Positions 5,598-55,344 of a DNA stretch of 64,000 nt are shown one piece after another. The position numbers were made by a program, and so were the translations under genes. The notes beneath the pieces were generated by a model. It searched no databases. It had not been told where the DNA came from and saw only the letters and a list, made by a program, of their open reading frames with translations. The stretch lies in IMG/VR virus record IMGVR_UViG_3300042934_000547, positions 1 to 64,000 of that record, one strand, 5' to 3'. Each line of letters starts with the position of its first letter. Position 1 is the stretch's first letter.

Positions 5598-7172
5598 TCA
5601 AAATTGCATAGGTTGTAACTTCTCACTTGTGTAGGTCAAAGCATATACAGCATGTATTGCTTCATCCTTAGCTTGCCTAGAGTTTGTTCCTGTTAATCCG
5701 ATTAGATATTTCTTACTATGAATGTATGAACGTATTTCTTCATTTGCCTCATCAGTATATACACCTTTTACAGTTACCTGATCACCGTCGTAATCTCCGC
5801 CAATTGGTATAAGATGAAGATTAGAGAACCGTAATGTATCAATAAACATATTTGATGTATTTGTTCCTATATCCTCTTCATTTATTATCGGATATCTACT
5901 AAACTTACCAAGTCTATCAACTATTATGGATTTCTCAGTATGTTTTGTTGAAGATATGGAAACCTTAGTTGCAAATTGTCCAAAATGTGATTCTATAGGA
6001 TAACGGGTAATCGTTATATGACGATTTTTGACAGATTCTGAACAAGCCATAAAAATTATATCAATCCATAATAATTTACGGCTAATTACTCTACCATCTT
6101 CAGTTTTATAACGGATTTTTGGATGTATAATCTTACCATCTTCAGTTTCCACTGATACTGGAACCAATCGATTAGCGAATCCTTTTATGAATCTATCAAG
6201 TTCTTGCTTTAGTATGTAATCTGTAAATTGCCCATCAATACTTTTTAACCGTACAGGTTCTCCATTATACATCGCTTTATTATCTTCAAAGAATCTTCGT
6301 ATAATGAGTTTCATATTAAAGATATTAAACGGATAAAAAGCAACTGCTGTGGCAGCTAAAGGTACCGATGCTGTATATAAATCACATTCTAAATCATCGA
6401 CAGATTCAACGTTTACATCAGGACAAGTGATAACCAATCTAACTGCATAATCTGTAGTTTTACTCATACCAGCTCTGGCAGTAATACCACCCTTTTTAGC
6501 TAAATTAGGTTCTCTTGTAAACCAATCATATATTGCAACTAATAACGATTGTGTTCGATAGACTGTTGCACCATTCATATCCATTCCATAATCTATTAAG
6601 TCGGAAAGTGAATTGGAACTTATGATTAGTTTTGAGTAGAGTTTATTTATCTCACCAACACCGAATTTTCCATCGGCAGTATTAGCATCTCTAAAACCAG
6701 CAGGAATTACTATCCATTTATCAATAACTGCCAATTTGTCTTTAATCATTTTTTCAACGAATTTAATATTGATATCTCTCTTATTAGAATCCGTTGATTT
6801 AAATTTTATTTTATCTAAATTCTTAATAAGCCATTTGATTCCTGTGTTACCATTCTCAGCAGCTACGATATGACCGTTTTCATCAATTTTAAATGAACCT
6901 TGCTCAGCAATTATTTCATTAATTCTTCTATCCATTCTAGTCATTATGATATAAACTAGTGGATGTATAAATTGAGCTTTAAGATCGATATAAGCATATC
7001 TGTTTTTTCTGTCATTTATCGTAATTCCGAATATATCATTAGATAATAATCCATTAGGTGTCGGCAGATTATCCCTAACAAAATATACAGGATCGTAAAC
7101 TTCTTTTAAATTATTTAGTTTAATGAACTTATTCGTATCAAGTAAATTAAGAACTAAATTCTTCTGATTCAT
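5598..7172 (-). CDS. Phage multisubunit RNA polymerase beta'-like subunit (N-terminal part with catalytic loop; probably the virion RNAP type)
   Basis: GLLSNDIFG (beta' region A-like), WIVIPAGFR, ITRYP and catalytic GGDYDGDQ motif. Start placed at ATG 7172 (AGGTGA RBS). The virion-versus-non-virion assignment is inference. Confidence 0.9.
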   Translation of the reverse strand: MNQKNLVLNLLDTNKFIKLNNLKEVYDPVYFVRDNLPTPNGLLSNDIFGITINDRKNRYAYIDLKAQFIHPLVYIIMTRMDRRINEIIAEQGSFKIDENGHIVAAENGNTGIKWLIKNLDKIKFKSTDSNKRDINIKFVEKMIKDKLAVIDKWIVIPAGFRDANTADGKFGVGEINKLYSKLIISSNSLSDLIDYGMDMNGATVYRTQSLLVAIYDWFTREPNLAKKGGITARAGMSKTTDYAVRLVITCPDVNVESVDDLECDLYTASVPLAATAVAFYPFNIFNMKLIIRRFFEDNKAMYNGEPVRLKSIDGQFTDYILKQELDRFIKGFANRLVPVSVETEDGKIIHPKIRYKTEDGRVISRKLLWIDIIFMACSESVKNRHITITRYPIESHFGQFATKVSISSTKHTEKSIIVDRLGKFSRYPIINEEDIGTNTSNMFIDTLRFSNLHLIPIGGDYDGDQVTVKGVYTDEANEEIRSYIHSKKYLIGLTGTNSRQAKDEAIHAVYALTYTSEKLQPMQF

Positions 7173-7476
7173 ACGCTTCACCTACTTTTATAATAATTTT
7201 ATTATTATTATGTTGTTGGGACACGCAGATTGGGTATATTTTATTGTATTTACTGATGTATGTCATATTAGAAATAGCATTCCAAAATATATTACACTCT
7301 GATGGATTAATGATATTTATAATAAACTCAACATGATTATCATTTTCATTTACTATAACTGAATCCGCAGAGTATGTCATAATTGAATTTACAACCATTA
7401 TTGATTCAAAAGTTTTTAAAATTAATGCTATCAAATCATCAGTATGAATTTTATTAACAAAATTAATCACATCCAT
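7147..7476 (-). CDS. Hypothetical protein
   Basis: 109-aa ORF with GAGG RBS, overlapping the RNAP start. Confidence 0.6.
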   Translation of the reverse strand: MDVINFVNKIHTDDLIALILKTFESIMVVNSIMTYSADSVIVNENDNHVEFIINIINPSECNIFWNAISNMTYISKYNKIYPICVSQQHNNNKIIIKVGEAYESEEFSS

Positions 7477-14656: not shown

Positions 14657-17011
14657 TTATTTTATAGGACAAATTCCAGCATCGCAACCATCAGTTCCTA
14701 TATCTAACTCTGTTTCATAAGTTTCATATTTAGAAAGAAGTGATGTTGAGAATGGTCGCATTTCGGATATACGTTTATTATATTCTTCTTCAGTAATAGC
14801 TTCATATGGCATTAATTGGTAGAAAGTATCATCTAAAGATAAGAATGTCAATGCAACACAAATATCCCAATTATCCCATACCCACTGTTCAACACCTTCC
14901 CACTCATTTTCTCTTACGTGAACTGTTATTGAACAGTTATGGTCTACATAATGTGCCATAAACATTTTATAGTTCTCTAATTGTTGGATAGCAGATACAT
15001 CATATTTAGTAACCCCTTCAGGAGCTTTACATGGAAATTCTAAAACTACTGTACTAGCTGTCTCCATAACTTGTCCAACTTCTGGGAATATTGAATAATT
15101 CAATTCCTTGCACACCTTTACTATAGGATCATGAGCATTAATACGAACTCTTCTTATATAGTAAGGGGCATGAGCGTAATGAACACCACTAGATACGGTA
15201 GGTAATTGAGATAATGTACCTTCTGGTTTAACTGTAGTTACTAATAGTGGAACATTTTCTCCTATCTGTTTAGCATATTTTTCAGACTCATCATGAGCAA
15301 TATTACGCATATTATATAACAATGCAGCCTCTTGTGAACTATTGATTTTGGTAGCATTGACCATATCCTGCCATCCAGTTAATGAGCATCCAAGGAGCTT
15401 ATCACGTTGTTGTACGTTATTCCATTCATTTAATTCTAATTCGATGCAAGTCATTCGATACGCAGCTCTTGCTGAAAGTTTCTGAGCTTCATATAAAGCT
15501 TCTGTATCAATTTCTCCAGTTGGAGTAACAAATGCCATAGTATTAAGAGTTGTAAGATTACACAAACCTTTGCTATCTAATAAGATTTCACCACATGGGT
15601 TTACACCATTCATGTTAGGTCTACGTTTAGATGCAGCCTCAGCATTCACCCAGCCCGGTTCTCCAGAAAATCTCATCTGTTCTATATGCCAATGTAATTG
15701 TTCTCTAGTAGGTCTTTGTTTATAATATATAGAGTTATTACTCATTGAACGATGGATTATCTCTTTATTTGGAACCCATTTACCATTTTCTTGGATATAT
15801 AGGTTCTTCTTAGCATTAATACAATCATGGTCATCAGAGTCTATTAACACTACTTCACTAGTACGTCTTACTCCACCAACAACTACATTTTCTCCAATTA
15901 TATTAACAATATCCATACAATCGATTGGTTTTAATTTGATTTTTGAACCCATGATCGATTGTTTTTGGATTACGTTAAGTATCTTAGTAAACATATTTTT
16001 TATTGAACCGTGACCACTAGCTGTACCGCCAAATGTTTTTAATGGTTCACCTTTAGGACGTACGTTGTTATAGTTGACAATTATCGTGTTAACTTCCTTG
16101 TAACTTGGATTGGCAACTAATTCAAAGAAGAAATTTAATGATTCAACCCAACCTTCTTTACTATCACCTATTGTTATAGTGGCAGTATCATTGTGAGCAA
16201 AAGTTAAACTTGTATTATTTTCTCGTTTACTCTTTGCTAGAGGTGAATAATCTTCATTGATTAATTTGAAATTAGTTCTAACTTTCGGTAATTTAGCAAC
16301 ATCATCTTTTAATATTCTTACACCAACACCAGCTCCGACCATGAGTAGATAAAATAAGTCCCCAAACGCATCAAAATTATCTATAATCTCAAACGCACAG
16401 TTAAAATTTCCAGAAGGGAAACTATATGCTACTTTAGTACCACCAACCCAGAATGTTCTACCTGATAAAAACTGTCTTAGATTGAATATATTGTCATATA
16501 ATTTTTCAGCTTCTTCTTTACCTGTTGGTGCTAATGAGCAGTTATATTCAACAGCCCTTCTAACGGTTTCCCACCAATATTCTCTTCTATTTTCTTCTGG
16601 TAAATATCTTGAATATGTACGTAGATAAACGAACTTACCTAATTCTGTCATAGGTGGTTCTATGTGTTTATATTTACTGATAAATTCATCAGATAACAAT
16701 CCCGATTTTTCTTCTTTTTTAGTATTACGTTTTTTATCTCTTTCATACCTGTAAACTATGTAAGTCTTAGCAGCATCTCTACGATCACTTGCCATCAATA
16801 AGTCTTCTACTAAATCTTGAATATTATCGACTTCTAATGCAAATGACAACGATTCGGCATGTTCATGTATCTTTGTTGTTATAGAATTGATAAGGTCTTC
16901 ATTTATACCTGCTGGTGTTTCTTTCATAGCATTTCTGATGGCATTTTTAATTTTGTCATCTTCAAAGGTAACAGTGTTACCATTACGCTTTATAATCTGT
17001 AAGTTGCTCAT
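14657..17011 (-). CDS. nrdJ: Class II (adenosylcobalamin-dependent) ribonucleotide reductase with N-terminal ATP cone
   Basis: IIKRNG ATP cone; RTYSR; NPCGEI catalytic motif; TTVKPEGTLS; C-terminal redox pair CDAGICPIK. Confidence 0.92.
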   Translation of the reverse strand: MSNLQIIKRNGNTVTFEDDKIKNAIRNAMKETPAGINEDLINSITTKIHEHAESLSFALEVDNIQDLVEDLLMASDRRDAAKTYIVYRYERDKKRNTKKEEKSGLLSDEFISKYKHIEPPMTELGKFVYLRTYSRYLPEENRREYWWETVRRAVEYNCSLAPTGKEEAEKLYDNIFNLRQFLSGRTFWVGGTKVAYSFPSGNFNCAFEIIDNFDAFGDLFYLLMVGAGVGVRILKDDVAKLPKVRTNFKLINEDYSPLAKSKRENNTSLTFAHNDTATITIGDSKEGWVESLNFFFELVANPSYKEVNTIIVNYNNVRPKGEPLKTFGGTASGHGSIKNMFTKILNVIQKQSIMGSKIKLKPIDCMDIVNIIGENVVVGGVRRTSEVVLIDSDDHDCINAKKNLYIQENGKWVPNKEIIHRSMSNNSIYYKQRPTREQLHWHIEQMRFSGEPGWVNAEAASKRRPNMNGVNPCGEILLDSKGLCNLTTLNTMAFVTPTGEIDTEALYEAQKLSARAAYRMTCIELELNEWNNVQQRDKLLGCSLTGWQDMVNATKINSSQEAALLYNMRNIAHDESEKYAKQIGENVPLLVTTVKPEGTLSQLPTVSSGVHYAHAPYYIRRVRINAHDPIVKVCKELNYSIFPEVGQVMETASTVVLEFPCKAPEGVTKYDVSAIQQLENYKMFMAHYVDHNCSITVHVRENEWEGVEQWVWDNWDICVALTFLSLDDTFYQLMPYEAITEEEYNKRISEMRPFSTSLLSKYETYETELDIGTDGCDAGICPIK

Positions 17012-19450: not shown

Positions 19451-19972
19451 ATGAATACAGAATTATTTTTCAGTAGTAACGATCAAACTTGGGCTACTCC
19501 TATAGATTTCTTTCTACGTTTAGATAATGAATTTGATTTTACTTTAGATCCTTGTTGTACTAAAGAGACAGCAAAATGTAGTACATATTTTACTCCAGAG
19601 ACAGATGGATTACATCAATCATGGGACGGTCATTCAGTGTTTATGAATCCACCGTATGGCGATGAAATTAAATACTGGATCGAGAAAGCATATGTCGAAA
19701 GTAATAATAATAATGCCCAAGTGGTTTGTTTAATACCCTCACGCACAGATACTAAATACTGGCATGATTATTGTATGAAAGCAGATGAAATAAGATTCAT
19801 TAAAGGACGATTAAAGTTCGGTAATAGTAACTCAGCAGCCCCATTTCCAAGTGCTGTGGTTATATTTAATAATTCTAATAATGTTCCAAAGATCGCATAT
19901 ATGAATAACAAACCTGAGTTAATCGGTCAACCTATAGATAGATCATTAACTCCTATAATTCGTAAAAAATAA
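19451..19972 (+). CDS. Phage DNA N6-adenine methyltransferase (phage Dam family)
   Basis: W.TP..FF..L..EF.F.LDPC, VFMNPPYG, VVCLIPSRTDTKYWH, IRFIKGRLKF. Confidence 0.9.
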   Translation: MNTELFFSSNDQTWATPIDFFLRLDNEFDFTLDPCCTKETAKCSTYFTPETDGLHQSWDGHSVFMNPPYGDEIKYWIEKAYVESNNNNAQVVCLIPSRTDTKYWHDYCMKADEIRFIKGRLKFGNSNSAAPFPSAVVIFNNSNNVPKIAYMNNKPELIGQPIDRSLTPIIRKK

Positions 19973-19991
19973 TGAATGTGAGGATAATTGT

Positions 19992-20279
19992 ATGGATATA
20001 AAATTTATATGTAAAGAATGTGGACGAGAGATTAAAGAGAAAAGTAATTTCTGTCCGCATTGTGGAAAAGAATTGGAAATGGTTGAAACGACATACAAGA
20101 TATCAGTCGAAATTGTTTTTACTGAGAAACCTAAAAACTGTTGTGGATGTAGATTTAGTAAAGATGAAATTGATGGATATTGTCTATTAAATCCAGATAT
20201 TATATTTAAGAACTATCATAAAAATAAATACTATGGTTTTTATGGTGATAAAAATGAAAAATGTCCAATAATATTATAA
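19992..20279 (+). CDS. Zinc-ribbon protein
   Basis: CKECG...FCPHCG plus a second Cys cluster. Confidence 0.65.
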   Translation: MDIKFICKECGREIKEKSNFCPHCGKELEMVETTYKISVEIVFTEKPKNCCGCRFSKDEIDGYCLLNPDIIFKNYHKNKYYGFYGDKNEKCPIIL

Positions 20280-46986: not shown

Positions 46987-47664
46987 TTATTTCCATAAAG
47001 GGTTATCCTGAATTCTCATTGCTATGATCATATTTCTAACCATATCTTTAGTCATATCGATAGTGCCATCAGTGTTTCCTTTGATTATCCCTCTATCAAC
47101 AGCTTTCTGTATTTCGTCCTGATAGAACTTATCAAATTCGTCAATTTTCTTATATCTTTTATTTTCCTGCTCAAGTGTTGCTACTTTTTCTGCAAGTTCC
47201 TTAACTTGTTTAAGTAATTCATCCATAATAACCTCCATGTTATATATTGTTCCGACTTTTAAAGATGCGATATCATGATACACTAGTGGATTTATCCATA
47301 CATTAGATGTATTTCTAATACCATAATGAAGATGAGAGCCAAAACTGTAACCAGTATTACCCATAATTCCTATAGGCTGTCCAACTTTAACAATAGTGCC
47401 AACCTTTACCAATCTTGATGATAGGTGGCAGAAATAATGCTTGTGTTTATCAGGGGATTCTATTGCAACATAATTACCCCATTGCCAAGTGATGTTACCT
47501 CTATCTGTAATCATTTGGCTGGAGACTACTTTACCAGATACTGGAGATAACACGGTTATATCTCCAACCCCTACAAAATCTACTCCATGATGATAACTAC
47601 TGTCACCATTTTCTAAAATACGTGGACCAAATTTACTAGTTATTTTAAATTTCTTAAATAACAT
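46987..47664 (-). CDS. M23 family peptidase (lysin) with C-terminal coiled coil and putative wall-binding motif
   Basis: HHGVDF (HxxxD), YFCHL, MGNTGYSFGSHLHY (HxH), INP. Confidence 0.88.
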   Translation of the reverse strand: MLFKKFKITSKFGPRILENGDSSYHHGVDFVGVGDITVLSPVSGKVVSSQMITDRGNITWQWGNYVAIESPDKHKHYFCHLSSRLVKVGTIVKVGQPIGIMGNTGYSFGSHLHYGIRNTSNVWINPLVYHDIASLKVGTIYNMEVIMDELLKQVKELAEKVATLEQENKRYKKIDEFDKFYQDEIQKAVDRGIIKGNTDGTIDMTKDMVRNMIIAMRIQDNPLWK

Positions 47665-47701: not shown

Positions 47702-48535
47702 TTAATATTGATTTTCATATTGATGATATAATTCAGCCAACTTAATATCAACTTTTTGCCTTTCGGTCAATTTGTCGCTATTAAATCGTTCCTCAGATAT
47801 CAGTTGCCCATTTCCATCTTTGTTTTGAATAGTGAAATAAGCTTTAACATTAGTATTACACATATTCTCAACAATAATTTGGTGCTTATTAAAATAACCA
47901 GAAATAATATACTCTGTCATCAGATTTATATATTGGTCTCTTATAATATTATAATCAGCACTCACAAATCCAAATTCAATTCGTTTAAACCCCAGATTAA
48001 TTAGATTAGTTATACCTTCTTTTAAATATCCAATATTGAGTCTATTAATTGTAAAGTGGGCGATAGGATTACGCCCACTCTTAACGAAATTATTGATATT
48101 ATCAACAATATAATCATAAGACCCTTTCCCTGTTCTCATGATACGATTACTATTATGAGAAACTTTATTACCATCAATCGATATACATAGCAATATGTTA
48201 TACTTCTCAATGATGTCAATAACCCTATCTGAGTAAATAGTACCGTTAGTTGATGTGATGAATCTAAATTTATGATTTGGATAATTTGTCACAATATATT
48301 CACAAATATTTTCCAATCGATTTATAAACAGAAATGGCTCACCACCCAAAAATTCGACTGTAATTGTTCCAGCTGATGTCTTTTGCATACTGGTTTCAAA
48401 CGTCTGTATCATTTCTTCAAGTGTGATATCTAATAGATTATTCTCATCTTCTACGTTATTGTACACATAACAATATTTACATCGCATATTACACAACTTA
48501 GTTATATACAACGTTATATGACGAAGTTTATCCAT
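47702..48535 (-). CDS. Radical SAM protein without SPASM domain
   Basis: TKLCNMRCKYCY (CX3CX2C), FLGGEP, TSTNGT, ISIDG; no C-terminal Cys cluster. Confidence 0.85.
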   Translation of the reverse strand: MDKLRHITLYITKLCNMRCKYCYVYNNVEDENNLLDITLEEMIQTFETSMQKTSAGTITVEFLGGEPFLFINRLENICEYIVTNYPNHKFRFITSTNGTIYSDRVIDIIEKYNILLCISIDGNKVSHNSNRIMRTGKGSYDYIVDNINNFVKSGRNPIAHFTINRLNIGYLKEGITNLINLGFKRIEFGFVSADYNIIRDQYINLMTEYIISGYFNKHQIIVENMCNTNVKAYFTIQNKDGNGQLISEERFNSDKLTERQKVDIKLAELYHQYENQY

Positions 48536-49659
48536 TAAAACTTTCCCTTCTGTATATTAAATTTCTTTGCTATGTTTTCATAACCAAGTTCATTTATATA
48601 TCTTTCAGATGCTTTATAAAAAATTTTCAGAGCTTTACATACACCATCGATTGGTTCGCATATATCCCTTTTACCTTGTTCCATTATGGCTGCAAAACAT
48701 TGTCCATAACAAACCTTATAAAGTTCACAATTTCGGCATTTTGGAGATATATCATGGGTGAAATTTTTATAAATATTAGCTACATTATGATTCTCATCAA
48801 TAGTAGTAAAAATGCTTCCCATCTTAGTACGCTCTAACCGACTATTAAAGAATCTTTGACATGGATATATATCACCGTTTGGTGCTATAGCAAGTATAGT
48901 TGACCCAGCGGTACAAAAATGCATTCTTTTCTCTCTTCTAGTATTGTAAGGAAGTAATAATCCATTATCATTAAATGCTTCATTAGAATTAAATTTTTCT
49001 ATTAAAAATGAAACATATTCATCATAAAATTTCTCTAGTCTTGCTAGATCATCATCAGACCATTCACAATCTCTTACAATACTTAAATTAGTTCGTCGAA
49101 ATCCATCATTTATAGAATCACGAATTCCATCCATGAGATAATCAATATTATCGGGTGCAATCATAGATTTAAAAATACGAGATCTAAGTGGAACATTATT
49201 TACCTTACAGTATGTTTTTATTGCTTTTAGACAGTCATCATAACTTCCTTTACCATTACTATAAACCCTACAACGGTCATGAGTAGTACGACCTCCATCT
49301 AATGACATACTGATTCGTATATCTTTATCTCTTAAATATATTAATTTCTCTTCATCTAACAAAGTTAAATTTGAGGTGGTCGCAATGGATATATTTACAT
49401 TTGGATGTAAACTTTGTACCATATTAATTTTATCAACAATTCTACAGAATTTATCCCATTCTAAAGTTGCTTCACCACCAAATAGATTAATATAAAAATA
49501 TTCTAAATTATTTTTAACGATGATATCATTAAAAAATGTTGGAAGTTGTTCAATAACATCATCAGTTATTGTTACGCCATTTTCCTTATCTACATAACAG
49601 TATTTACATCTTAAGTTACATTTTTCAGTAACTATAATAAGTATACTTTCAATCTTCAT
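48535..49659 (-). CDS. Radical SAM/SPASM maturase
   Basis: TEKCNLRCKYCY, LFGGEA, SLDG; SPASM CTAG...GDIYPCQRF...CRNCELYKVCYGQC...VC. Confidence 0.9.
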   Translation of the reverse strand: MKIESILIIVTEKCNLRCKYCYVDKENGVTITDDVIEQLPTFFNDIIVKNNLEYFYINLFGGEATLEWDKFCRIVDKINMVQSLHPNVNISIATTSNLTLLDEEKLIYLRDKDIRISMSLDGGRTTHDRCRVYSNGKGSYDDCLKAIKTYCKVNNVPLRSRIFKSMIAPDNIDYLMDGIRDSINDGFRRTNLSIVRDCEWSDDDLARLEKFYDEYVSFLIEKFNSNEAFNDNGLLLPYNTRREKRMHFCTAGSTILAIAPNGDIYPCQRFFNSRLERTKMGSIFTTIDENHNVANIYKNFTHDISPKCRNCELYKVCYGQCFAAIMEQGKRDICEPIDGVCKALKIFYKASERYINELGYENIAKKFNIQKGKF

Positions 49660-49690
49660 TACATTCTCCTTATTTTGTTAATCAATAATG

Positions 49691-49729
49691 AACATGGTAG
49701 CCTACCATGTTTAAGGTGTTAACTACACC
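49691..49729 (-). terminator. Twin hairpins downstream of the Cys-rich substrate gene (partial terminator or mRNA stabiliser)
   Basis: GGTGT-taact-ACACC and AACATGGTAG-c-CTACCATGTT; no strong U-tract. Confidence 0.55.
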
Positions 49730-49739
49730 CAACCCAATC

Positions 49740-50141
49740 TCAGGTGCATGTGCAGCAATCGCAATCACATGCACATCGATCACAAGTACATGCACATCGA
49801 TCACAGTCACAGTCACAGTCATTACAATTACATGAACAATAGTTATTATATATCGCAGTAGCAGCAGTTTGTGCTGCCGAAAAAATAGCTGGATAAATCA
49901 GTTTACCTGCTTCAAAGTTTATTAATGTACTTAAATCAGCTTTCGGATTGACATATGCATTAGCATTTGCTGCTGTTAAATTATTCTTAATTGATAAAAA
50001 TAATGCTGACATAACTTTCTGATTAGCTACAGCTGCCGTAGTATCAGCAGCTTGACCAACTCGTGTTCTGGCATTATTAACAGCAGTAACAACAGCAGTT
50101 CCATCAGCCGCCAATATCGCTGTACCTTTAGTTAACGCCAT
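49740..50141 (-). CDS. Ala/Thr-rich protein with C-terminal Cys-rich (CxCxCxx)n tail; putative radical SAM substrate/precursor
   Basis: 133 aa; last 32 aa CSCNCND CDCDCDR CACTCDR CACDCDC CTCT (15 Cys). Confidence 0.75.
   Translation of the reverse strand: MALTKGTAILAADGTAVVTAVNNARTRVGQAADTTAAVANQKVMSALFLSIKNNLTAANANAYVNPKADLSTLINFEAGKLIYPAIFSAAQTAATAIYNNYCSCNCNDCDCDCDRCACTCDRCACDCDCCTCT
49767..49805. repeat. 18-bp direct repeat at 21-bp period encoding the Cys heptads
   Basis: ACATGCACATCGATCACA at 49767-49784 and 49788-49805. Confidence 0.85.
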
Positions 50142-50451
50142 TTACACCACTCTCTTTCATAATAAAATCGATACTTTCATACACCATATCACTAATCGTA
50201 AACTTATAAATTCCATGTGAAATATTAGTGATATTCTTTATGATATTATCTCCAATTATAATTTTAACTGCCTCTACTGGTTTTTCCCTATAATATTGAT
50301 TTAGCACTTCTCCATTGATTCCTGCTAATTCATTAATAAGTCTAACTTGAACCACATCACTACTAAGGTTCATGAAAAATCCGATACCGTATGCCTTTTC
50401 GATTATGACATCTTCATCTTGATATTCGATTTTGATTTTTATATTGTCCAT
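50128..50451 (-). CDS. Hypothetical accessory protein of the radical SAM cluster
   Basis: 107 aa, beta-rich, GGAG RBS. Confidence 0.65.
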   Translation of the reverse strand: MDNIKIKIEYQDEDVIIEKAYGIGFFMNLSSDVVQVRLINELAGINGEVLNQYYREKPVEAVKIIIGDNIIKNITNISHGIYKFTISDMVYESIDFIMKESGVNGVN

Positions 50452-50452
50452 A

Positions 50453-50890
50453 TTATTGGTCTCCTTTCAATGTGGAATTTACTAGTTTAGTATTAGAGAG
50501 AAACATTCTTTCATCAGAGTGATCCCTAAAATAATATATTGCATAACTTATACTCTTGATATCATGTATTTCATCATATACCAACCCAGCATCATCTAAT
50601 AATTTTACGGATATATTTTTATTATTTAATACTGCATTTTCAAGCATATCGAACTTATCACTAAATCCTATAGTGGTGATATTTTTAATTGCTAGGGAAT
50701 TTATTATCATTTCAGTTAAAGTCTTAGCAGTTTCTAGTGTTTCTTTTTTAAAATAAACACCTAATACTGCCGGAAATGATGGAAGTGTTGATTCTGATAA
50801 ACCTACTTCAGATATAACATCGAATACTATTACTTCAACATCATCAATCAGAATTTTGATCTTTGTCATGACAGTTACACTCTCTTTCAT
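50453..50890 (-). CDS. Hypothetical accessory protein of the radical SAM cluster (distant paralog of 50128-50451)
   Basis: 145 aa; shared KIKI.I start and VKxx...IxxIxxxxY...E.xF ending. Confidence 0.6.
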   Translation of the reverse strand: MKESVTVMTKIKILIDDVEVIVFDVISEVGLSESTLPSFPAVLGVYFKKETLETAKTLTEMIINSLAIKNITTIGFSDKFDMLENAVLNNKNISVKLLDDAGLVYDEIHDIKSISYAIYYFRDHSDERMFLSNTKLVNSTLKGDQ

Positions 50891-52142
50891 TCATCATAAG
50901 TGAGAATTTTTCAGTCAATAACACTTCTTGTAACTCTAACAAATGTTGTAATGTCACGATTTGTCCTTCTGTAAAATTCTCACTCAGTAATCTTCCCATT
51001 TCCTGTAAAATAACAATAGAGTTTTTGTCAGGTTTATTTATTTTTCCGAATAATTCCTCATAAACATAAATTGACAATTCTTTCTCAATTTCTAAGAGTT
51101 TACAATTTTTTGGAAAACCATATGCAATGTTTCCATTATGATTATAATTAATAGCCATACAACTTCTACAATTATAATTATCACAGTCCGAACAAGCTTT
51201 ATATCCAATCATATATTTTCTATACAATTCTTCATATTGCACACATTTTGATTTATCAACCCCATCAAATACTGAACCGATTTTAGTATCTGGATCGGTT
51301 AAAAATCCATGACATGGATACACATCACCATTAGGGGTAATAGTGCAATATGATACTCCGGCACCACAGGATTTATCAGCACGTTTATCTTTATATTGTA
51401 ATGATGTAAATACATCATGTTCTTGAATACCATTAGTATTGCAATCGATGATAATATCATTTGCGATTTTTGTATATTCTCGTCTAAAGATATCGTAGTC
51501 ACTATCATCCCAGTCTTCTTCATGTAATGCCATGAACCATATTTTTTTAAATCCTAATTCATCTTTGAAAAATTTGTATGTCTTATGTGCGTATGGTAAT
51601 GTGGCTTTTGTTACAACACTATGCACTGATATTTTATTTTGCGGTACATTAATTCTATTAAATAAATCCCTTATCTTCTTTATAGAATTAATTATATTAT
51701 TAGAAGAACCTTTTCCATTTAAATCAATTCTTTGTAGGTCATTAATTTCAGGGATAGAATCAAATGAGATTTGAATAGAAAAACTTTCAGGGCTATTTGT
51801 CCACCAATTAATCAAGAATTGTTCATATTCATCACTATATAGAACTCCATTAGTGATTAATCCAGATGTGTATACCAGATTATTTTCCTTTGTTTTCATC
51901 ATAGCATAATTAAATATGTGGTTCATCACCTCAACATTTATAGTCGGTTCTCCACCAAAATATGTAATATCAATACCTTTCTTTTCATTCTCTAAAGCTT
52001 CATTAATCAAAAAATCAACAGCTTTTTCGGCTATTTCTTTTGTCATAAAGATTCCTTTACCTGTTCCCTTTTCAAAACAATAAGTACAATTTAAATTACA
52101 AGCATCTGTTAACATCACTGATGCACTTGTTAATCCTGACAT
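50844..52142 (-). CDS. Radical SAM/SPASM maturase
   Basis: TDACNLNCTYCFE, YFGGEP, ITNG, ISFD; SPASM CGAG...GDVYPCHGF...CSDCDNYNCRSC...NC; helical C-terminal extension. Confidence 0.9.
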   Translation of the reverse strand: MSGLTSASVMLTDACNLNCTYCFEKGTGKGIFMTKEIAEKAVDFLINEALENEKKGIDITYFGGEPTINVEVMNHIFNYAMMKTKENNLVYTSGLITNGVLYSDEYEQFLINWWTNSPESFSIQISFDSIPEINDLQRIDLNGKGSSNNIINSIKKIRDLFNRINVPQNKISVHSVVTKATLPYAHKTYKFFKDELGFKKIWFMALHEEDWDDSDYDIFRREYTKIANDIIIDCNTNGIQEHDVFTSLQYKDKRADKSCGAGVSYCTITPNGDVYPCHGFLTDPDTKIGSVFDGVDKSKCVQYEELYRKYMIGYKACSDCDNYNCRSCMAINYNHNGNIAYGFPKNCKLLEIEKELSIYVYEELFGKINKPDKNSIVILQEMGRLLSENFTEGQIVTLQHLLELQEVLLTEKFSLMMNERECNCHDKDQNSD

Positions 52143-52218: not shown

Positions 52219-52239
52219 GGGTTGGTATTATACCAACCC
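52219..52239 (-). terminator. Terminator after the tail-fibre triplet
   Basis: GGGTTGGTA-tta-TACCAACCC followed by ATTCTTTTATTT on the minus strand. Confidence 0.75.
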
Positions 52240-53253
52240 CTATCTATTCATTATGAGAATCTCTATTAATTCTATTTCATCAGTAGTCTTATTTTGTAGA
52301 GATTTACCTACAATAGTACCGGGAATATTTTCTATCGATTTCATTCCTACACCTTCTATATCGGATGAAGTAATTAAATCTCCAATTTCTATCTTTCCAG
52401 TAATATATACTTTCAATCTACCAGCCAAACCAATAGGGATATAATTTTTCAAATTATCTTCATTTGATACGTCTTTATCCCCACCTAATAAGAATCCATA
52501 ATTGTCAGAAACAACACCTACTATCTTTTTAGAATTAGCTGATGATGAATAACAATATGTATTAGTGTCTGGTTCTAACTCGATAATATGATTAGGTTCG
52601 TAAGTGACATCTGGTTTATGTTTCTTAAATAACTCAGCGTAGTCATTCCATACAGCATTAGTTATTAAATCCCCTTCAATCCAGACTTTTTTCATTACAG
52701 CACCCATTGACCAACCACCAACAGCTAATGCATTACTCTTGTTTAACCCAAAATTTAATGCATATGCACCCGCTCGGTGAAATGATATAAAGGCGGCTGA
52801 TGCACTGTCTGAACGTATTTCTAGACCACCAGCTGCATATGCTGGTGAATAACTAACATCGGCACCACCAACAATTGCAGCTGTGAATAATCTACTACTA
52901 AGCGTTCCACCAGCAATGCCGTCTCTCCATAATGATTTATTTTTAAATCTGATATCAGTATTACCATTAGTTATTGATAATCCTACTGCTGGGAAATCAC
53001 TACTACCTTGTGCAACACCCCAAACGTTATTTGGGTCTGTGTAAATACCCCAAGCCTGAGTTTCTATTCCCTGAATATCAGCTGTTGGGGTTAATCCCAT
53101 GAGAATATCAGTCCAACCACCACTACTACTTTTAGATATTCTAATTCCTTCCTGATAATTATTTTCAGAAGGTTTAAGTATTAATCGTTTAAGATATGAA
53201 TTACCATTAACATTTAAGCTTCCATTTACAATAGTTGAATTTAACCTACCCAA
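52240..53253 (-). CDS. Tail fibre / receptor-binding protein A with C-terminal intramolecular chaperone (Peptidase_G2-like) domain
   Basis: MGRLNST N-terminus; SFHRAGAYALNFGL...GGWSMG fibre motif; NAVWNDYAELF autocleavage-type motif; TTG start. Confidence 0.75.
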   Translation of the reverse strand: MGRLNSTIVNGSLNVNGNSYLKRLILKPSENNYQEGIRISKSSSGGWTDILMGLTPTADIQGIETQAWGIYTDPNNVWGVAQGSSDFPAVGLSITNGNTDIRFKNKSLWRDGIAGGTLSSRLFTAAIVGGADVSYSPAYAAGGLEIRSDSASAAFISFHRAGAYALNFGLNKSNALAVGGWSMGAVMKKVWIEGDLITNAVWNDYAELFKKHKPDVTYEPNHIIELEPDTNTYCYSSSANSKKIVGVVSDNYGFLLGGDKDVSNEDNLKNYIPIGLAGRLKVYITGKIEIGDLITSSDIEGVGMKSIENIPGTIVGKSLQNKTTDEIELIEILIMNR

Positions 53254-53296
53254 TATTAAACACCTCCCGTCTCTATATTATAAATATTTATATTAT

Positions 53297-54229
53297 TTAG
53301 CAGTTCATAATCAATACATTGATCTTTTTTATATCTTCATTTAAATCAGTATCTAAGGCTTTAGCAATTATGGTTCCCTTAGGATTATCCAATTCCGATT
53401 TCATTCCTACACCTTCTATATGTGAAGATGTTATTAAATCTCCAGCCTCTATAGGTCCTATTACCCAAAGCTCAACTCTCCCTGCTAAACCAACGGGAAT
53501 ATATGTTTTTAAATTTTTCTCAGTAGATTGTTCTTCTCCACCAAGTAAGAATCCGTAACTATTTGATACAATACCTACTGCTAACTTAGAATTTGGAGTT
53601 GAAGAATATTTATACGTTTTGCTTTTTGGTTCTACTTCAATAATATGATGTGCTTCATAATTAACAGATGGATCGTGTTTCTTAAATAACTCGGCATAGT
53701 CATTCCACACAGCATTGGTTATCATATCACCAGCTAACCACGCACGTTTATTATATGATGGACCAGCAAGAATATCACCAGTTACATACAGTGGTTTATT
53801 TGTATGAAATCCAACGGTTGCATCAGTAACAAAATGACAATAACTTGTGTTTTCAGCACCAAAAGATGATGTACGACCACTTTTTAGTGATACTAGGTTG
53901 CCTTTTGATTCTACATTACTATTTCCTGTTATTTTACCAGCGACGATGTTTGCAGTACCAGTAGCACCACCAAACGTAAATTCGATTGGAATAGGTTTAC
54001 TATCCTTAGCCCTATAGCCAAAACGAATAGTACTCGCATTATTACTTCCACCAAAATTTATTTCATTATTATTTTCAATATATAATTTTACATTACCTAC
54101 AACACCCTCACCTGCCATTAATCCGTTTTTGCTATATAAAGCCCCATTCACATTTACATCACTACTTAAATGAGTCTTTCCGCTAACGTTTAAACTCCCA
54201 TTTATAACAGTTGAATTTAATCTACCCAA
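53297..54229 (-). CDS. Tail fibre / receptor-binding protein B with C-terminal chaperone domain
   Basis: Same N-terminal anchor and NAVWNDYAELF...GLAGR...GDLITSS domain; different middle region. Confidence 0.75.
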   Translation of the reverse strand: MGRLNSTVINGSLNVSGKTHLSSDVNVNGALYSKNGLMAGEGVVGNVKLYIENNNEINFGGSNNASTIRFGYRAKDSKPIPIEFTFGGATGTANIVAGKITGNSNVESKGNLVSLKSGRTSSFGAENTSYCHFVTDATVGFHTNKPLYVTGDILAGPSYNKRAWLAGDMITNAVWNDYAELFKKHDPSVNYEAHHIIEVEPKSKTYKYSSTPNSKLAVGIVSNSYGFLLGGEEQSTEKNLKTYIPVGLAGRVELWVIGPIEAGDLITSSHIEGVGMKSELDNPKGTIIAKALDTDLNEDIKKINVLIMNC

Positions 54230-54276
54230 TATTAAACACCTCTTTTCGAGCTGAAATGATAGATTTTATCTATATT

Positions 54277-55344
54277 TTATCCAGCCATAATTAAAACATT
54301 TACTTTCTTTATATCTTCATTTGGATTGGTTTCTAAGGCTTTTCCTATTATCGTTCCTTTAATCTTTAACTCTGATTTCATTCCCACACCTTCTATATCT
54401 GATGAAGTAATTAAATCTCCAGCACGTATTGGTCCGGTTACCCATACTTTAACTCTTCCAGCTAAGCCTATAGGGATAAAATTTTCTAAGTTCTCTTCAT
54501 TGGTTTTGTTTTCTTCTCCACCAAGTAAGAATCCATAGTTATCAGAAACCACTCCTACTAATAATTCCGAATTAGCTTTGGAAGAATATTTATATGTATT
54601 AGTATGAGGATCTAGCTCGATGATATAACCAGCCTCATAATCCTTATTATCATGTTTTTCAAATAACTCAGCATAGTCGTTCCATACTGCATTAGTTATC
54701 AAATCACCAGCCAACCATACACGCTTACTTGATTGAGCATATATATCGCCCTTAACAAATAATCTACCAGTATTTGAACCCAATGTCATCATTGTGACTG
54801 GATTATCAGCACCAGCATTACTACGTGATTCCCATGACCATCCATACCCTGTTGAATTTTCTACAATCTGTCTTATAGCCCATGATGATACATCACCTAA
54901 AGCTACACCAGCACCACCACCCGGGGCAGCACCAGTGATTGGTAACATAAATATTCGCCAAGTTTTTTCATAACCGGCACTATAGAATCTAATTCCGCTG
55001 GCTGCTCCTCCTGCATTAAAACTTAAACCACCAACGAGTGTAGCATTGTTTGCAATTAACCCAGCACTTCCACCTGAACCACCGAATACAAAGGAGCTAG
55101 GGATAGGTTTACTATCCTTAGCTCTATATCCAAAATAAATAGTACTTAAGGCATTACTCCCGCCAAAATTAACTTCAGAATTAAATTCAGGATATATTTT
55201 CATCAATTCATTGTATCCCGGCTGGTCAGTAGTAAATCCACTATTTCCATGCACTGTGCCTGATACATCTAAATTATTTCTTATATATGCCTTACCATTA
55301 ACAGTTAGAGTTCCATTTATAATGGTTGAGTTTAATCTACCCAT
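54277..55344 (-). CDS. Tail fibre / receptor-binding protein C with C-terminal chaperone domain
   Basis: Same termini; shares the NFGGSN...FGYRAKDSKPIP module with protein B. Confidence 0.75.
   Translation of the reverse strand: MGRLNSTIINGTLTVNGKAYIRNNLDVSGTVHGNSGFTTDQPGYNELMKIYPEFNSEVNFGGSNALSTIYFGYRAKDSKPIPSSFVFGGSGGSAGLIANNATLVGGLSFNAGGAASGIRFYSAGYEKTWRIFMLPITGAAPGGGAGVALGDVSSWAIRQIVENSTGYGWSWESRSNAGADNPVTMMTLGSNTGRLFVKGDIYAQSSKRVWLAGDLITNAVWNDYAELFEKHDNKDYEAGYIIELDPHTNTYKYSSKANSELLVGVVSDNYGFLLGGEENKTNEENLENFIPIGLAGRVKVWVTGPIRAGDLITSSDIEGVGMKSELKIKGTIIGKALETNPNEDIKKVNVLIMAG

Follow-up and report, generated by a model that had tools for sequence, protein, structure and literature searches.

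What does a 133-residue protein, with a cysteine-free body and a tail of Cys-x-Cys-x-Cys-x-x repeats, do among three radical-SAM (rSAM) enzymes in a soil phage? The stretch of DNA analysed (hereafter the window) is 64,000 nucleotides long and is the first 64 kb of a 231,975-bp IMG/VR contig (record IMGVR_UViG_3300042934_000547). It has 31% G+C and encodes a phage multisubunit RNA polymerase beta-subunit homologue (5598-7181, minus strand), a primase, a ribonucleotide reductase (14657-17011, minus strand) and large virion and tail proteins, and is therefore from a jumbo phage. The N-terminus of the ribonucleotide reductase also hits an NrdD-like family; together with the RNA polymerase homologue, this fits a jumbo phage, possibly of an anaerobic host, which would suit oxygen-sensitive rSAM enzymes. 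A sequence-only reading of the region had proposed that the protein has a structural-protein-like body with a strict seven-residue CxCxCxx tail, and this description is confirmed.

The ORF at 49740-50141 on the minus strand encodes 133 residues, of which 1-101 are Cys-free, with 25% Ala, 11% Thr and 11% Asn. Residues 102-133 read CSCNCND-CDCDCDR-CACTCDR-CACDCDC-CTCT, i.e. four exact heptads plus CTCT, comprising 15 Cys, 7 Asp, 3 Thr, 2 Asn, 2 Arg, 2 Ala and 1 Ser. An exact 18-bp repeat (TGTGATCGATGTGCATGT) occurs twice at a 21-bp period, and TRF finds period 21 with 2.6 copies. No other reading frame in the window, on either strand, reaches 7 Cys in a 30-residue stretch; the one frame that reaches 6 (19959-20276, plus strand), with CxxC pairs, looks like a zinc-ribbon protein and is unrelated to the heptad family. 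All Cys positions are kept in a homologue of 59% identity while the x positions vary, so the pattern is selected rather than due to chance. An assembly artefact in the repeat was rejected, because a Logan assembly of the only run that holds the region (a soil metagenome, probably the source sample) reproduces 49300-50600 with 0 differences at a word depth of about 500.

The gene lies in a tightly packed six-gene cassette, directly after three tail-fibre paralogues, with all genes on the minus strand. In the order of transcription, the features are as follows.

52240-55344, minus strand: three tandem tail-fibre paralogues (337, 310 and 355 aa), the first of which hits the Peptidase_G2 IMC domain.
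52219-52239, minus strand: terminator-like hairpin between the last tail-fibre gene and rSAM-A, marking the upstream edge of the cassette.
50844-52142, minus strand: rSAM-A, 432 aa, radical SAM plus SPASM, with CX3CX2C at residues 15-22 and no N-terminal RRE.
50453-50890, minus strand: small ORF S1, 145 aa (the start is probably the Met at residue 8), of unknown function, keeping its position in related cassettes.
50128-50451, minus strand: small ORF S2, 107 aa, of unknown function, overlapping the start of the substrate gene by 14 nt.
49839-50141, minus strand: N-terminal domain (residues 1-101) of the 133-aa protein, Cys-free and predicted to form three helices.
49740-49838, minus strand: Cys-heptad tail (residues 102-133 plus the stop codon), containing the 18-bp repeat.
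49691-49711, minus strand: hairpin with a 9-bp stem, identified by pattern match only, which may be an attenuator or an mRNA-stabilising element.
48535-49659, minus strand: rSAM-B, 374 aa, radical SAM plus SPASM (CX2CX5CX3C present), no RRE.
47702-48535, minus strand: rSAM-C, 277 aa, radical SAM core only, with no SPASM domain and no C-terminal Cys cluster.

The three tail-fibre paralogues share N-terminal (MGRLNST.INGSL) and C-terminal (AVWNDYAELF...) segments but have different middle parts, and look like a set of alternative receptor-binding fibres. An M23 peptidase with an S-layer-homology motif (46987-47664, minus strand) lies directly after rSAM-C; it is probably a lysin and hints at a host with an S-layer. 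No protease of a leader-removing type and no transporter is present in the cassette. The 133-aa protein has no GG motif, and Asp13 interrupts its moderately hydrophobic N-terminal segment, in accord with the sequence-only view that there is no double-glycine leader or signal peptide.

All three enzymes score best against the PapB ranthipeptide maturase model (NF047865; 194, 188 and 131 bits for rSAM-A, rSAM-B and rSAM-C), although the cut-off is 340 bits. The SCIFF, CXXX-repeat, Nif11, QhpD and CcpM maturase models come next, all below their cut-offs. The nearest solved structure for each enzyme is CteB (PDB 5WGG; E values of 3e-34, 2e-28 and 3e-17), but the alignments start at CteB residue 97-102 and the CX3CX2C motif sits at residues 14-22, implying that the N-terminal peptide-recognition domain of CteB-type enzymes is absent. 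For S1 and S2, no RRE or PqqD match, or any other match, was found in Pfam, PHROGs, the Atlas or PDB profiles.

We then asked whether the protein belongs to a wider family. The 133-aa sequence gave no hit in Pfam, NCBIfam or PHROGs, even at E up to 10. A word-based search identified one homologue (P0002; P numbers denote family proteins and L numbers related loci), 59% identical and encoded on a 246-kb phage contig, which has the same six-gene cassette and the same four heptads; S1 and S2 are also conserved there, at 35% and 56% identity, although their cross-locus alignment rests on gene position only. A profile of the Cys-free N-domain alone, scored against 1.8 billion representatives, returned only P0002, P0003 and P0004, plus one weak, probably spurious hit without repeats. 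P0003 and P0004 both carry CxCxC repeats, and P0003 lies in the same gene order. A profile of the four full sequences then found 628 proteins at E up to 0.01. Among the 120 listed, the unit consensus is C-[T/S]-C-[N/D]-C-[N/D]-[Y/R] with an optional eighth residue (A, S or G), so that the strict seven-residue spacing holds for the window protein, whereas across the family units of 7 and 8 residues are about equally common. The number of units runs from 2 to 18, four being the commonest count (46 of 100 outside the close subgroup), and IMG/VR loci show up to 28. The sequence-only reading had suggested that the tail can expand or contract by slippage; heptad number does vary across the family, but it is 4 in both the window protein and P0002, so recent slippage here is not shown. 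The proposal that the spacing differs from the Cys-every-fourth and SCIFF spacings also held: it falls outside the SCIFF, Cys-every-fifth and CXXX-repeat families.

In family members the repeats either end the protein, often exactly at NY, or are followed by a 14-residue SDxRLKxNIxY[MLIF] stub, by a domain of about 74 residues beginning with that motif, or by a Hint or intein-like domain. The 74-residue domain matches Peptidase_S74 from profile position 1 at 19-25 bits, around the 22-bit cut-off (P0049 and P0085 pass, P0028 and P0015 fall just below), and in P0028 also matches annotated S74 structural proteins of cultured phages by tblastn. The Hint-type fusion is seen in P0098 (residues 90-226) and probably in P0003 (residues 150-499; L006:3105-4604), where it seems to hold a large insert, although the Pfam hits are below threshold. 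S74 domains are trimerisation chaperones that cut themselves off at their first Ser, and Hint domains also self-cleave at their own N-terminus; we infer that all four layouts would leave the Cys array as the C-terminal tip. The window protein itself has no S74 domain and ends 4 residues after the last full heptad. Many S74-type members begin with a second Cys/His-rich motif, MAC[TN]GH followed by repeated C..H or CxGH units (P0007-P0009, P0011, P0017-P0019, P0027, P0030 and others), which could be a metal site or a further modification target and is absent from the window protein. Several members of the close subgroup (P0004, P0020, P0021, P0023, P0037 and P0106) end in a short acidic segment with a terminal Trp (DEW, PEW, PGW or DDW), which the window protein and P0002 lack.

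The close subgroup of 21 members, including the window protein, shares an N-domain of roughly 100 residues and lacks S74. An HMM of that domain with the repeats removed hits the N-regions of the other, largely S74-type proteins, with E down to 1e-11 in a database of 100 sequences. An AF2 run with a 2-sequence alignment was uninformative (pLDDT 41), but with 29 sequences AF2 predicts three helices (11-27, 45-59 and 84-100) at pLDDT about 70-90 and no confident structure for the tail. Foldseek finds nothing significant in the PDB, including no solved fibre fold, and only weak hits to uncharacterised phage proteins in BFVD. These observations support the sequence-only inference that the long N-region is not a typical leader, and the suggestion that it is fibre-like is supported by family context rather than by fold.

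The pairing with rSAM genes, also part of the sequence-only reading, is conserved. Every locus looked up by protein identity carries 3-7 rSAM genes around the heptad gene. In 40 further IMG/VR loci, 35 have at least one rSAM ORF within 8 kb, 31 have at least three, and the maximum is nine; the window has three in 64 kb, all in the cassette. Of the five loci without any, four are cut short on one side and one (L047) has full flanks. rSAM-A and rSAM-B have reciprocal best hits in all eight loci compared, including S74-type loci, and rSAM-C has them in the four complete loci of the close subgroup. The window protein thus conforms to the family as we define it here, i.e. a Cys-free, predicted three-helix N-domain plus at least 4 units of C-x-C-x-C-x-x(-x), with rSAM-A and rSAM-B orthologues adjacent. 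Fibre genes also precede the cassette in L001, L007 and L014. S74-type loci (L012:10722-20720 and L014:10676-20633) carry up to seven rSAM genes together with glycosyltransferase, UDP-glucose dehydrogenase, transketolase-like and halogenase-like genes, suggesting further tailoring such as glycosylation. Genes of another related phage (L008:7205-12650 and L009) contain in-frame TAG codons (27 in 8 genes) and stop only at TAA or TGA; in its heptad protein, P0014, the three TAG codons stand for Gln, and this phage therefore uses TAG-to-Gln recoding.

No family member was detected in 50,697 GenBank phage records, where megablast and tblastn found nothing for the region or the protein, nor for the relatives P0014 and P0019, and only the S74 part of P0028 matched cultured phages. 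A scan of 185,579 species genomes gave only six loci, all on MAG contigs. The nearest rSAM-A relatives in GenBank phages are 25-30% identical genes in unannotated faecal phage contigs. No paper found describes the motif or rSAM modification of phage fibres.

Comparison with characterised systems reveals partial similarities. The freyrasin system PapA/PapB, which forms Cys-S to Asp C-beta thioethers, likewise has repeated Cys with Asp acceptors on the C-terminal side, and PapB is reported to be indifferent to the spacing between Cys and a C-terminal acidic acceptor (PMC12373016). Here, however, the motif is CxCxCxx with Asp adjacent to Cys rather than CX3D, the enzymes have no RRE, the substrate has a 101-aa N-domain predicted to be folded, there can be three to nine enzymes per locus, and the system is phage-encoded beside tail-fibre genes. 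In the SCIFF system (CteA-CteB; thermocellin), the precursor is about 45 aa with six Cys rather than 133 aa with 15, and although rSAM-A and rSAM-B have SPASM auxiliary-cluster motifs, the TIGR03974 scores are 153, 115 and 80 bits against a cut-off of 425. In QhpC/QhpD of quinohemoprotein amine dehydrogenase, an rSAM/SPASM enzyme appears to make Cys-to-Asp/Glu thioethers inside a protein that is kept as a subunit; the QhpD scores here (75-116 bits) are far below the cut-off of 453, and QhpC has no repeat array and no phage context. The CXXX-repeat system (TIGR04115/TIGR04117; PF27846) also has repetitive Cys-rich targets next to rSAM/SPASM maturases, and Atlas neighbours include viral PF27846 proteins, but Cys occurs there every fourth residue rather than at positions 1, 3 and 5 of a heptad, and the window enzymes score 127, 119 and 116 bits against a cut-off of 350. 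No PF27846 hit is on record for P0001, P0002 or the listed relatives in precomputed Pfam assignments, although the Pfam copy we searched directly appears to lack this model. The 59%-related phage carries such a system directly after its cassette (L001:12458-16685 and L002:12458-17269), consisting of a 603-aa rSAM scoring 344 bits against the 350-bit TIGR04115 cut-off, followed by 551-aa and 421-aa proteins packed with CxxxC repeats; the window lacks it. With phage fibres and spikes bearing a C-terminal S74 chaperone (endosialidase, T5 pb1), the similarity lies in the many relatives in which S74 follows the last heptad at once, and in the position of the cassette after fibre genes.

We propose, with moderate confidence and in the absence of any experimental datum for a family member, that the 133-aa product is the substrate of rSAM-A, rSAM-B and rSAM-C, as inferred from the conserved linkage and the affinity of the enzymes to Cys-peptide maturases. 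By analogy with PapB, CteB and QhpD, the enzymes most likely use 5'-deoxyadenosyl radical chemistry to join Cys sulfur atoms to side-chain carbons of the neighbouring Asp, Asn or Thr residues, which would turn the tail into a rigid, thiol-free thioether ladder. The tail offers 15 Cys beside 13 Asp/Asn/Thr/Ser residues, and the family consensus pairs each Cys with T, N or D. The protein probably stays whole and acts as a small fibre-like (probably trimeric) virion or assembly component with the modified array at its C-terminal tip, an end state that relatives would reach by cleaving off an S74 or Hint domain; trimerisation and virion location are likewise inferred. The chemistry is only an analogy, given that the enzymes fall far below every curated family cut-off; rSAM-C lacks the auxiliary clusters that known thioether synthases use, and the number of rSAM genes per locus (1-9) does not map simply onto three Cys registers.

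Other readings are less likely but remain possible. A different rSAM reaction on the same Cys array, such as Cys-to-formylglycine oxidation (as in anSME), S-to-C-alpha sactionine links, C- or S-methylation, or inter-chain crosslinks stapling a trimer, is the least doubtful of them: anSME and the sactipeptide synthase SkfB are among the PDB and NCBIfam hits, the sub-threshold scores do not fix the reaction type, the SPASM-less rSAM-C may catalyse a different step, and other loci add glycosyltransferases and up to nine rSAM genes. Nevertheless, the best-scoring models for all three enzymes are the side-chain thioether maturases PapB and CteB, and the near 1:1 pairing of Cys with Asp, Asn or Thr fits known ranthipeptide acceptors.

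It is unlikely, though not excluded, that the tail is an unmodified metallothionein-like metal- or Fe-S-binding element, the alternative raised in the sequence-only reading, or a disulfide ladder of a fibre, with the enzymes acting on something else. CxC motifs are common in metallothioneins, trimeric phage fibres may bind metal ions along their axis (as probably at the T4 gp37 His-x-His iron sites), AF2 gives no fold for the apo tail, and a few family loci show no rSAM gene nearby. The linkage of the heptad gene with rSAM-A and rSAM-B orthologues across very divergent phages is hard to explain on this view, and the enzymes resemble peptide-Cys maturases, not nucleotide or sugar enzymes. There is no metallothionein Pfam hit, and although the window tail has no aromatic residue, a conserved Tyr in most family heptads is atypical of metallothioneins. 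Similarly improbable is a classical RiPP, in which the N-region would be an unusually long leader, removed before the crosslinked core is released on lysis as a bioactive peptide such as a bacteriocin, signal or metallophore. A substrate gene among rSAM/SPASM genes is the arrangement of a RiPP cluster, a hairpin follows the gene as in many precursor genes, and long leaders seem to occur in the Nif11 and NHLP families. However, the cassette has no protease or transporter and the protein no GG or other known cleavage motif, no RRE was found in the enzymes or an RRE-like match in S1 or S2, the N-domain has no Nif11 or NHLP hit and is a conserved fold, predicted to be three-helical, and relatives carry S74 trimer-chaperone domains at the C-terminus.

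rSAM Cys maturases are known for small secreted peptides and for one enzyme subunit (QhpC). The present finding points to a substrate family with hundreds of sequence clusters, found almost only in phage contigs, with its own Cys spacing, a body predicted to be folded, and direct fusions to tail-fibre processing domains. It is possible, although tentative, that many uncultured, often jumbo, phages use RiPP-type rSAM/SPASM enzymes to install a ladder of covalent crosslinks in the C-terminal tip of a trimeric fibre-like virion protein, exposed either directly, as here, or after self-cleavage of an S74 chaperone or a Hint domain; this would be the first case of radical peptide-maturase chemistry building a virus structural component, on a previously unrecognised CxCxCxx scaffold. 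If the enzymes crosslink this array, a compact repeat scaffold with leader-independent enzymes would become available for peptide and protein stapling, the reach of these enzymes would extend to virus structural proteins, and phages would be using RiPP chemistry to harden or functionalise a virion part.
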